Source of the DNA: Wallemia ichthyophaga EXF-994
Lineage: Eukaryota; Fungi; Basidiomycota
NCBI RefSeq assembly: GCF_000400465.1
Contig: NW_008806302.1
Location: 1-32,000, forward strand
DNA: 32,000 nt
Reading direction: 5' to 3'
Positions 21,741 to 27,513 of this stretch are shown here, piece by piece (positions within the stretch are counted from its first letter, which is position 1; every line of letters begins with the position of its first letter). The position numbers and the translations under genes are program-made. The notes beneath the pieces are model-generated. The model saw only the letters and a program-made list of their open reading frames with translations, had not been told where the DNA came from and made no database searches.

Positions 21741-22271
21741 TTAGCTGGTGAGAGGGGCTGGGTTGGTGGGGTTGGTCGGAGTGCCTGAGCTTCCTGGGTT
21801 GCCTGGGTTGCCTGCACTAGGCACAGCACCAGGTGGAGCGAGCATTTTGCCACCGCTCATAATGTGTCGGTGTGCCTGTAGCTGCGAGTAGAAATCCGCG
21901 TCGCTGATAACGCCCTTAAAGATACGCTGGCGCTTAGAAGGAGCGTTCTTCTTGTTGAGATCGACGCCTCTAGCCTCAGCCCTCTTGCGCTCATACTCGG
22001 CTCTGTCTGGTGCGGGTACACCCTCCATACCGAATATTTCAATCTCAAAGGTAGATCTCCCTGGCAGCGCATTTTCAATCCTGTCAGCCTCGAGCTTGTG
22101 TACTTGTTGGCAGTGCACCGCTAGACCATTGGCAGTGTTCAGCCGACGTGGACACAGCGTACAGCGGAAGTGTTTGGCTTTCTGGTGCGAGATTAACACC
22201 TTGTCATCCTCAAATTCCCTCTCGCAGTACCAGCACCACGGCTTATTTTCAATCCTGCGTTTCTTGACCAT
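21741..22271 (-). CDS. C2H2 zinc-finger protein, BuGZ/ZNF207 family (176 aa)
   Basis: MVKKRRIENKPWCWYCEREFEDDKVLISHQKAKHFRCTLCPRRLNTANGLAVHCQQVH...NALPGR...EIFGMEGVP is the ZNF207/BuGZ N-terminal signature. Confidence 0.9.
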   Translation of the reverse strand: MVKKRRIENKPWCWYCEREFEDDKVLISHQKAKHFRCTLCPRRLNTANGLAVHCQQVHKLEADRIENALPGRSTFEIEIFGMEGVPAPDRAEYERKRAEARGVDLNKKNAPSKRQRIFKGVISDADFYSQLQAHRHIMSGGKMLAPPGAVPSAGNPGNPGSSGTPTNPTNPAPLTS

Positions 22272-22369: not shown

Positions 22370-24161
22370 ATGCACTCAACCAGCGACAGGAAATCATCTT
22401 GGACGACGTATCTCGGTCGATTGTGGATATCTCTCGTGACTGCGCTCATCTCCTTCTTGAGCTTCTCGTTCCAGCTATATGGCACTTACTATCGGCGTAG
22501 AGATGTTGTTGTGGTGAAGTGCGCTGTTTTCTCATCTCTGCTATCCTCGCTGATGAAGATTTTCACCGTAGCATTCTCTCATTCTTCATCTTCTACAATT
22601 ACTTCCGATGTACTACTACCGATCCAGGTGGAGTGCCAGTGGATTATGTGAGTGGTGCTATTTCACCCCCCACATAAACTAACACTCACCCAGGAACCAC
22701 TCCGAGACACTCAAGACACACTCGAAAACCCCGCTACGCCAAGATATTGTAGATCCTGTCACGTCTATAAACCTCCCCGCGCCCACCACTGCTCCAAATC
22801 AGGCAGATGTGTTCTGCGGATGGATCACTATTGCCCGTGGATGAACAACTGCATTGGATTCTACAACTACGGCCACTTTATCCGATTTCTGGTTGGCGTC
22901 AATGTTGGCTGCGTCTTTCTCCTCTATGTCCTGTCCAACAGGGTGCTTTACCCGGTGGGCGCGGTGTGTTTGCTTAGCGTCTCTGTCTAACATTAACACC
23001 CCCAGACACCCGTCCCTGATAACGCCGAAACAGCGCTGATCGTCGCAAATTACATCGCCTGCCTGCTCACACTCATCGTCGTTGGCAGCTTCTCGCTATA
23101 CCAATTCTACGCACTCTGCACCAACACGACGACCATCGAGTCTTGGGAAAAAGACAAGGTGGCTAATTTAGCGCGCAGAGGACGGATACGCGATGTAAGT
23201 GAGGGATTCGGGAGCGAATTTTACTCGCTAACGAGTCTCAGATTAAATACCCTTATCAGCTCTCAGTGTATGAGAACATCTGCGCCGTGCTCGGTAATAG
23301 ACCTTGGCTATGGCTCGTACCACAGCGCATGCATGGCAACGGGCTTGCTTACCCCACCGCCACAAATTCAGGCAAGTGGGTAGATGTTCACGTCAGAGGG
23401 AGGAGTATTCTGCGCGAGTCGGGTGCGAGTGCAAGTAGGCGTAGGCGTGGGCAGGCACCACACGCTGCTCTTCAACTCGACGATGGAAGCCCTGTTAACA
23501 CACACGTTACACCCGACGAACACATGCGCGGTGTTGAGTTTGAGAGTGAAATGAGTCTTCTCGAGGGTAGATTGCTTGAGCTGGCGTGAATTCTGAGGGG
23601 TTAGCACACAGAGTACCTGCATTGCATTGTCATTCAACACACACAAATCATTGCATAGATGCATATCATACTGATTCATTGGTGGCTGCTCACACTCACT
23701 CACTCACACTCACTCACTCACCCCCACTCCCACTTCCCCTCTGCGCGTGAACATATCCCTCCACTTTTCCACTCACTTCACTAACAACCCACACAGACGC
23801 AGATAGCTGGCCACCGCGTGTCGAGGGATACGCGCACAGCTTCGATTACAGCGACGGTGACGACGCGCCTACTAGATTCACCCTCAACCAGTCGCCATGG
23901 ACGTACCAGACTGGCCTCAATCCCCGCTTGACGCCCTCTTCGTCGCGGCAGAGACACAACAGACATATCAGACAGGGAGACGAGGGGTGGGAGGTGCAGG
24001 GTGCGACTGCCTCTCCATATGCATATGAATTCGCGCATGAGAACACTACATTTGAGGATGCGACTGGACGCTGGACCCAACGCGATGGACGCGTCTATCG
24101 AGTGTATGAGGAGGAGGAGGAGGAGGATCACGATGACTATGGAGGCAGTGAAGGGGATTGA
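22370..24161 (+). CDS. PFA4: DHHC-family palmitoyltransferase Pfa4 (DHYC variant), 6 exons
   Basis: LGRLWISLVTALISF, TTDPGGVP, RYCRSCHVYKPPRAHHC..MDHYCPWMNNCIG, NTTTIESWEKDKVA..RRGRI..KYPY, SWPP, RQGDEGWEV. Introns 22519-22571, 22648-22693, about 22955-23005, 23195-23241, 23372-23796. Confidence 0.88.
23372..23796 (+). other. Unusually long (425 nt) GC-AG intron with extensive self-complementarity; candidate structured RNA element
   Basis: Donor G|GCAAGT, branch point CTAAC at 23781, acceptor CACAG at 23796. Phase-1 splicing restores the frame (TNS-D-ADSWPP). Complementary arms found by eye, e.g. 23384-23392 with 23746-23754. Confidence 0.65.
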
Positions 24162-24284
24162 ATGTAATTGCATCTGCGTCTGCGTATAATATTTGTATAC
24201 AAGCTGTTTTTATACCTTTTGCGATAATTTTCACCTCGCTTATCGCGGTGGACTAACTGACGTAGGATTTGCATCAACACCGCC

Positions 24285-27428: not shown

Positions 27429-27513
27429 GCATTAATGGGGTAGTGGTAACCTCGATCGTTGCCATCTTAGAGATTGATTCGATCGGCCCCCGGTTCAATT
27501 CCGGGTTAATGCA
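27429..27513 (+). tRNA. tRNA-Gly(GCC) with a ~14-nt intron
   Basis: Acceptor stem GCATTAA/TTAATGC-A, D arm GGGT/ACCT, anticodon stem GATCG/CGATC with GCC at 27461-27463, intron about 27465-27478, T loop GGTTCAATTCC. Confidence 0.93.

Follow-up and report, generated by a model that had tools for sequence, protein, structure and literature searches.

Why would a fungus whose introns run to about 50 nucleotides (nt) keep one of 425 nt in a palmitoyltransferase gene, and begin it with GC in place of GT? The question arises in the first 32,000 nt of contig NW_008806302.1 of Wallemia ichthyophaga EXF-994 (this whole stretch is the window), whose + strand carries a DHHC palmitoyltransferase gene (Pfam DHHC, E = 8.6e-35). 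In database searches its product comes closest to PFA4 of Wallemia hederae (74% identity) and then to that of W. mellicola (64%), with PFA4 proteins from many further basidiomycetes next. A sequence-only reading had singled out the fifth intron of this gene, 23372-23796, as a GC-AG intron lying among introns of about 43-63 nt and folding into a rod that could sequester its own 5' splice site, and had proposed an RNA switch or a hosted non-coding RNA. The intron itself, long for a genome whose introns measure about 50-60 nt, is borne out by an in-frame junction and a canonical exon 5, but the explanation that we favour, at a probability of roughly 60%, is a different one: a facultative helix-bridged GC-AG intron, in which a bridge resembling the zipper stems of yeast enables splicing and a weak donor leaves it incomplete, yielding two isoforms.

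The W. ichthyophaga genome has 45% GC and a mean intron length of 61 base pairs (bp), compared to 55 bp in W. sebi, and alternative splicing there takes mainly the form of intron retention (PMC3849046). We compared five Wallemia-lineage genomes, namely the window, W. hederae (L001), W. mellicola (L002-L007), a Logan genomic contig (L008) and an AT-rich species represented by metagenome contigs from ENA (L009-L011); series of five values follow one genome order throughout, the window being first and the AT-rich species fifth. PFA4 orthologues from Lentinus, Mycena, Rhizoctonia and Thecaphora served as outgroups in the duplex control, with Rhodotorula added for the comparison of donors. Only L008 and L009-L011 came to light in protein searches, no further species turned up when metagenomes were scanned for the coding tail described below, and strain differences within W. 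mellicola at this locus are too few to be informative.

The GC-AG intron and the two coding tails

The modelled exons of PFA4 lie at 22370-22518, 22572-22647, 22694-22954, 23006-23194, 23242-23371 and 23797-24161, the last two being referred to here as exons 4 and 5. The features at their junction are as follows.

23242-23371, + strand: PFA4 exon 4, IKYPYQLSVYENICAVLG...AYPTATNS, from translation and from alignment with PFA4 of Wallemia and further basidiomycetes; the final exon that the two isoforms share, ending in phase 1
23372-23381, + strand: GC donor CAG/GCAAGTGGGT, which also forms tail codons GGC AAG TGG GT.
23371-23589, + strand: read-through open reading frame (ORF) of 72 codons plus TGA, GKWVDVHVRGRSILRE...DDGSPVNTHVTPDEHMRGVEFESEMSLLEGRLLELA and stop; an alternative C-terminal tail if the mRNA is unspliced
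23779-23785, + strand: branch-point consensus CACTAAC, from motif search, whose branch A (23784) lies 12 nt short of the 3' splice site
23794-23796, + strand: 3' splice site CAG, from frame continuity into ..NS/DADSWPPR..
23797-24164, + strand: exon 5, the canonical PFA4 C-terminus of 121 amino acids (aa) plus stop, from alignment with other basidiomycetes

The intron runs from the donor CAG/GCAAGT, a GC donor in an otherwise strong consensus, through the branch site CACTAAC to the AG acceptor CACACAG/AC, and its excision restores the reading ..NS/DADSWPPR... An in-frame junction of exon 4 with exon 5 is possible only via this phase-1 GC donor. Exon 5 holds the canonical PFA4 motifs SWPPR, SPWTY..GLNP, GDEGWEV and RVYRVYEEE, aligns to the basidiomycete motifs WPPRDP, SPWTY, RRGSEGWEVRP and RYxVY, and shows a coding pattern of substitution within Wallemia; it is present in all five genomes, in each case in frame only through the GC-AG junction. 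The four short introns of the gene (53, 46, 51 and 47 nt) each have a branch motif of the form CTAAC or CTGAT with the branch A at +35 to +37, and their CTAAC motif lies 9-18 nt from the 3' splice site. Other donors, and a division of the region into several short introns, were considered and rejected: no other GT or GC donor of the right phase reaches exon 5, and a multi-intron structure is also disfavoured by the middle of the intron, which is unalignable and contains non-triplet indels.

The intron had been taken to be wholly non-coding, but its first 216 nt are a conserved in-frame coding extension. The exon-4 frame remains open through the donor for 72 codons, up to a TGA stop at 23587-23589, and orthologous read-through ORFs of 69-72 codons with a homologous stop occur in all five genomes. 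In W. hederae and W. mellicola the database proteins continue past the donor and share the peptide GKWVDVH.RGRSI.RE...HAAL...DGSPV.T..PDE..RG..FE....E.RL.ELA and then the stop. Pairwise differences in the tail are concentrated at third codon positions (25/13/40, 24/15/47 and 20/13/37 at positions 1/2/3), as is variability over the 68 ungapped columns of the five-genome alignment (45/27/60), and this pattern persists outside the helix arm described below (41/26/53); in 17 of the 68 columns the amino acid is kept with different codons. Non-synonymous divergence (dN) of the tail is 0.28-0.36, close to the 0.26-0.42 of exon 5, while synonymous sites are at or beyond saturation, NG86 dS being undefined in 6 of 9 comparisons. 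Sequence directly after the tail stop is unalignable across genomes.

An in-frame ORF that passes through a donor and is conserved as protein marks the element as a candidate retained intron or composite terminal exon with an alternative C-terminus. Since both tails are conserved as protein, both C-termini are likely to be under selection, and we infer that the locus encodes two C-terminal isoforms and yields both spliced and unspliced mRNA in cells. The tail was found only in the Wallemia lineage, a HMMER profile search of 1.84 billion representative proteins returning in addition only one spurious repeat protein, and a Pfam scan of both C-terminal tails found no domain. AlphaFold models the tail of the W. 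mellicola short isoform (P0002 residues 279-347) as a disordered basic/acidic linker leading into a C-terminal alpha-helix that is predicted with confidence (residues 323-346, pLDDT 74-88). An antisense ORF of 111 aa (23368-23703, - strand), overlapping that of the tail, is open in the window, W. hederae and W. mellicola; it contains stops in L008 and L011 and is probably not a gene.

All five Wallemia-lineage genomes have exactly the donor CAG/GCAAGTGGGT, whereas Lentinus, Mycena, Rhizoctonia, Rhodotorula and Thecaphora have a GT donor at the same intron position. Its C at +2 falls on the third, synonymous position of the Gly codon GGC, and the alternative GGT would make a canonical donor. 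The identity of the GC donor in a lineage with saturated synonymous sites and a conserved tail therefore indicates that a weak donor has been kept throughout. GC donors are generally weaker than GT donors and are associated with alternative splicing. As a separate observation, GTAAGTGGGT / GCAAGTGGGT is common to Wallemia, Lentinus and Mycena and extends well past the usual donor consensus. The donor-proximal GTGGGT (+5 to +10) also has an exact complement, ACCCAC(T), beside either the branch point or the 3' splice site: this is so in the window (23787-23792), in L008 (near 4533) and in Mycena (L013, near 2925, 9 bp there).

A conserved helix between the ends of the intron

The part of the former rod that is conserved is a helix joining the beginning of the coding tail to sequence that lies a little before the branch point. 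Together with its window-specific extension, this helix comprises the following elements.

23384-23406, + strand: helix 5' arm, intron +13 to +35, ATGTTCACG-T-CAGAGGG-A-GGAGT, inside tail codons 5-12; from duplex prediction, pair table, partition function and shuffles
23726-23754, + strand: helix 3' arm, ACTCC...CCCTCTG-CG-CGTGAACAT, exact complements, ending 29 nt upstream of the branch A
23410-23460, + strand: inner rod extension, 5' side, GT-rich codons in the least conserved part of the tail; paired in the minimum free energy (MFE) fold; window-specific
23680-23725, + strand: inner rod extension, 3' side, including the (CACT)n / CTCACACTCACTCA microsatellite; from Tandem Repeats Finder, repeats and fold

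In all five genomes intron positions +12 to +36 pair with a pyrimidine-rich segment shortly upstream of the branch point, forming a core helix of 21-25 bp. The 5' arm has the five-genome consensus GAUGUUCACG-N-NNNNGGG-A-GGAGY, corresponding to tail codons 5-12. This long-range pairing is present in both MFE and centroid folds of the full introns, and its probability in pre-mRNA partition functions is 0.88, 0.92, 0.85, 0.91 and 0.71. Duplex energies between the first 60 and last 130 nt of the intron are -60.1, -68.0, -37.2, -61.6 and -34.3 kcal/mol, corresponding to z-scores of -4.4, -4.4, -3.3, -5.3 and -3.9 against dinucleotide-preserving shuffles of the 3' part, with none of 400 shuffles as good in any genome (in the window -60.1 compared to -42.9 +/- 3.9 kcal/mol); mononucleotide shuffles agree. 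No such duplex was found in the orthologous introns of Lentinus, Mycena, Rhizoctonia and Thecaphora (z of -1.2, -0.4, +1.4 and +0.8).

A pair table built on the duplex predictions reveals compensatory changes at helix positions 23 (C-G/G-C), 24 (A-U/C-G), 26 (A-U/G-C), 29 (G-C/A-U/G-U) and 35 (U-A/C-G). The 3' arm is a conserved island in otherwise unalignable non-coding sequence and follows the synonymous changes of the 5' arm. A comparison of cognate with non-cognate arms favoured the cognate pairing in some species only, and is uninformative because the 5' arms are nearly identical. Comparison of the orthologous intron across Wallemia, which the sequence-only reading had called for, thus yields a helix conserved in five genomes with five compensatory pairs, and such conserved and covarying pairing of the intron ends makes it very likely that the RNA structure is functional.

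The remainder of the rod fares less well. The complementary segments listed by the sequence-only reading all lie where it had placed them, and the first four pairings between the ends are exact, while the fifth contains a 2-nt bulge and the sixth one wobble and one mismatch; the two pairings described as competing inside the rod were located but are imperfect, with an indel or mismatches and wobbles. Against shuffled sequence the terminal helix is non-random in the window (z = -4.4), but the fold of the whole intron is marginal (z = -1.94; MFE -135.5 compared to -123.9 +/- 6.0 kcal/mol, with 3 of 100 dinucleotide shuffles as good). The (CACT)n / CTCACACTCACTCA microsatellite (23689-23729) is specific to the window and pairs with a GT-rich part of the tail that has a 3-codon insertion there, and the inner rod sequences and their partners differ in other species. 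Given the marginal z-score and the microsatellite, the rod as a whole is weak evidence.

Two further blocks lie between the tail stop and the 3' arm, amid unalignable sequence.

23614-23632, + strand: non-coding block 1, TACCTGCATTGCATTGTCA, aligned in the window, W. hederae and L008; its core GCATTGTCA is also found in W. mellicola
23654-23666, + strand: non-coding block 2, CATAGATGCATAT, from an alignment of four species

Both TACCTGCATTGCATTGTCA and CATAGATGCATAT occur in the window, W. hederae and L008 and, in part, in W. mellicola, and may represent a processing signal or a protein-binding site.

Geometry of the helix and proposed mechanism

The distance from donor to helix (5' linker) is 12, 11, 11, 11 and 22 nt and that from helix to branch A (3' linker) 29, 24, 24, 21 and 33 nt, which puts the branch point 41, 35, 35, 32 and 55 nt from the donor when measured through the helix. 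The introns themselves are 425-535 nt long, of which the helix loops out 358-487 nt (371-487 nt in four species, including the rest of the tail ORF), leaving a collapsed intron of 54, 48, 47, 45 and 88 nt, the fifth being that of the AT-rich species. In four of the five species the collapsed geometry therefore resembles that of ordinary introns, which measure 46-53 nt with the branch A at +35 to +37.

It had been suggested that the rod sequesters the 5' splice site. This does not hold across species, as the AAGTGG/CCACTT pairing that would cover the donor has a probability of about 0.3 in the window, and positions +1 to +9 pair with different partners in the other species. A helix with one end 11-12 nt past the donor and the other 21-33 nt short of the branch point has the geometry of a bridging stem and not of a mask.

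We propose that the intron, about ten times the normal size for this genome, would be brought by the helix to a donor-to-branch spacing of about 35 nt, allowing a spliceosome adapted to short introns to remove it, as with the yeast zipper stem. Removal would join exon 4 to exon 5 and give canonical PFA4, 389 aa in the model. Where the intron is kept, read-through of 72 codons to the stop at 23587-23589 would give an isoform of 340 aa that shares the DHHC core and the TTxE and PaCCT motifs and differs in its tail, which is specific to the lineage; its transcript would either retain the intron or be polyadenylated within it. The GC donor, weak and conserved, would make splicing incomplete, so that both isoforms are produced. 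The helix would thus most likely favour splicing and not inhibit it, and the GC donor would probably tune the isoform ratio.

Several points weigh against this interpretation. The linker sums of 32-41 nt in four species fall below the 42-nt minimum modelled for S. cerevisiae, and in yeast not every zipper stem promotes splicing (PMC12350175). The covariation draws on only five genomes, with the same 5' arm in two of them; energy minimisation, by which the 3' arms were located, is biased towards pairing; coding already constrains the 5' arm; and in the AT-rich species pairing is strong only in the inner part of the helix. There was no Wallemia cDNA-derived protein among the protein-search matches. 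Finally, a full-length retained mRNA would have a long 3' untranslated region (UTR), and its coding region would itself be crossed by a 25-bp helix; efficient translation is hard to reconcile with this if the mRNA does not end within the intron.

A more elaborate possibility is that the GC donor, the bridging helix and the two conserved blocks together form a structure-gated decision point that sets the ratio of two functionally distinct PFA4 isoforms, although we consider this unlikely. The decision may lie between splicing, once transcription has passed the 3' arm, and termination or retention of the transcript at a time when the helix has yet to form, with the ratio perhaps regulated by salinity, temperature, a helicase or an RNA-binding protein, and one arm of a regulatory helix may thus be written into the coding sequence of one isoform.

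Alternative explanations

The same helix could hinder rather than help, together with the weaker donor pairings obstructing access of U1/U6 or U2 and favouring retention; a helicase, RNA-binding protein, temperature or ionic conditions would then form or melt it and switch PFA4 between isoforms. Helix A does begin only 11-12 nt from the donor, whose positions +1, +2 and +5 to +9 have high predicted pairing probability in five species; AAGTGG can pair with CCACTT in the window; a regulator could bind to the intronic blocks; of the alternative-splicing events in W. ichthyophaga, half were seen at a single salinity (PMC3849046); and splicing is improved, not impaired, in some zipper-stem mutants of yeast (PMC12350175). 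However, the donor finds its partners in the upstream exon in two species and in the downstream exon in three, the core at about -30 to -40 kcal/mol is too stable for a physiological thermometer, and the geometry fits that of bridging stems. Nor does an RNA switch of the kind first proposed find support, as a conserved mutually exclusive pairing of the 5' arm was not found, the folds of the first 260 nt differing in every species, and Rfam contains no aptamer-like element matching the intron. We regard an inhibitory gate as distinctly unlikely. A role for the helix in the unspliced mRNA, affecting translation of the tail, stability, nuclear retention or processing by RNase III/Dicer, is less likely again: one arm lies in the tail coding sequence and the other in the would-be 3' UTR, the duplex is long (22-45 bp), and protein-level selection on the tail implies that the unspliced mRNA matters, but no RNase III signal is marked in the sequence, and while the position of the helix is conserved relative to the donor (11-12 nt) and branch point (21-33 nt), its distance from the stop varies from about 135 to 260 nt. 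This suggests that the helix is positioned by reference to the splice signals and not to the stop.

It is also conceivable, though we would give this little credence, that the complementarity is incidental and results from purine-rich codons (RGRS, encoded by AGAGGGAGGAG) facing an ordinary polypyrimidine tract, and from a CA-rich microsatellite facing GT-rich codons. Whole-intron folds with z of only -1.9, -2.7 and -1.5, an inner rod that in the window is a (CACT)n repeat, and inner extensions that are not conserved are all expected on this account. It is at odds with helix A (GATGTTCACG/CGTGAACATC), which is of mixed sequence and not purine against pyrimidine, with the failure of composition- or dinucleotide-preserving 3' shuffles to match the duplex energy in any of five species, with the two-sided compensatory changes at five pairs, and with the lack of the duplex in the long introns of four other basidiomycete orthologues. 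Least probable of all, to the point of being hard to credit, is that the intron hosts a non-coding RNA, such as a small nucleolar RNA (snoRNA) or riboswitch, or is the relic of a hairpin mobile element, either a miniature inverted-repeat transposable element (MITE) or an introner, with terminal inverted repeats (TIRs). The complementarity of the ends is TIR-like, the intron is far longer than its neighbours, and the two conserved non-coding blocks are without assigned function. Yet one of the supposed TIRs is conserved coding sequence, and no second copy lies within the 32-kb window, while the intron is orthologous in five deeply diverged genomes; a MITE or introner is rejected since the intron is ancient and its position ancestral in Basidiomycota. 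The sequence-only reading had recognised no thiamine pyrophosphate (TPP) aptamer and no C/D or H/ACA box RNA, and Rfam agrees: there was no match in the whole window at gathering thresholds, and in 23000-24200 at an E-value of up to 10 there were only two chance-level matches (E-value >4). The hosted RNA that it nevertheless entertained has no Rfam family match beyond chance inside the intron, and the conserved blocks are without snoRNA box motifs.

Annotation, gene order and other basidiomycetes

Neither of the public Wallemia models contains the canonical C-terminus. The W. mellicola protein ends at the read-through tail, with the canonical C-terminal exon absent from the model (L002:7045-7858), while the W. 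hederae model (L001:7064-7762) splices after the tail and enters exon 5 out of frame, giving KLATARQRVLV and not ESWPPRAKEYS. In Wallemia PFA4 the canonical C-terminal exon thus lacks annotation and a second, lineage-specific isoform is predicted, and the two public models are incomplete or frame-shifted. Elsewhere in the gene, the first intron of PFA4 (22519-22571, 53 nt) most likely uses an unusual GTGCGC donor, which is preferred because it is the sole model giving ..VVVVNILSFF.., matching ..IVLLNVFSFI.. of W. hederae.

PFA4 is flanked by a C2H2 zinc-finger gene (21741-22271, - strand) and an asparaginase gene (from 24285, + strand). The order POM152, C2H2 zinc-finger gene, PFA4 is common to the window, W. 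hederae and W. mellicola; the gene downstream of PFA4 is the asparaginase in the window and W. mellicola and a permease in the W. hederae model. A tRNA-Gln gene (anticodon TTG) lies at 27429-27513 on the + strand.

In several other basidiomycetes the intron at the same position is likewise longer than usual and has an in-frame read-through ORF: it is 256 nt long in Lentinus with an ORF of 29 codons (L012:1492-1747), 230 nt in Mycena with 22 codons (L013:2727-2956), 337 nt in Rhizoctonia with 56 codons (L014:2841-3177) and 571 nt in Thecaphora with 74 codons (L016:1589-2159); in Rhodotorula it is short (76 nt) and the in-frame stop lies beyond it (L015:1553-1628). The read-through tails of these fungi are dissimilar to that of Wallemia. 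Several database proteins stop in the read-through, and the UniProt 'isoform 2' of Cryptococcus PFA4 diverges exactly there. Retention of the phase-1 intron of PFA4 may be ancient or recurrent.

Comparison with known systems

If the bridging interpretation is correct, the PFA4 intron provides a phylogenetically supported splice-site-bridging helix outside budding yeast, with compensatory changes, and a natural test of how intron-definition spliceosomes deal with an oversized intron in a fungus with introns of about 50 nt. A single sequence would serve in three roles, as the context of a splice donor, as an arm of the helix and as protein code. In other basidiomycetes PFA4 is important for the integrity of the cell wall and for tolerance of stress (PMC4430228), and control of its isoforms in an extreme halophile therefore deserves attention.

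The closest parallel is with the zipper stems of long S. cerevisiae introns (RPS17B/RP51B and RPL7B; Rangan et al. 2025, PMC12350175), whose arms are placed in the same way, one near the 5' splice site, the other upstream of the branch point, and which likewise loop out most of an intron of ~400-500 nt and shorten the effective distance across it. In its length and in the distances of its arms from donor and branch point the helix described here fits the definition of zipper stems in that study; that it forms and affects splicing in vivo is a prediction. The total linker modelled for yeast is 42-85 nt, compared to 41, 35, 35, 32 and 55 nt here, and in four species the sums copy the spacing of Wallemia's own short introns (+35 to +37) and not that of yeast. 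Yeast zipper stems are moreover poorly conserved (20-30%), with covariation that is hard to find (PMC12350175), whereas the Wallemia helix is conserved with covariation. Unlike in yeast, the 5' arm in Wallemia PFA4 is also protein-coding in the unspliced isoform.

With the splicing control of fungal TPP riboswitches of the Neurospora NMT1 type the PFA4 intron shares intronic base-pairing near a fungal 5' splice site, but it has no Rfam aptamer and no conserved alternative pairing, and its donor-adjacent sequence is coding. It resembles other U2-type GC-AG introns in having GC at +1/+2 in an otherwise perfect consensus (CAG/GCAAGT), a normal CTAAC branch and a CAG acceptor, and differs from the typical case in that the C at +2 is the third base of a synonymous GGC Gly codon, fixed in five Wallemia-lineage genomes. 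In composite terminal exons, as in the secreted and membrane forms of immunoglobulin mu, a weak 5' splice site competes with termination or retention. PFA4 is similar in that a suboptimal internal donor would be either spliced or read through to its own stop, giving two C-termini; the weak site is here a GC donor accompanied by a bridging helix, and an intronic poly(A) site is hypothetical. The PFA4 intron would thus combine known kinds of element, namely the zipper stem, the intron-retention isoform and the GC-AG intron.

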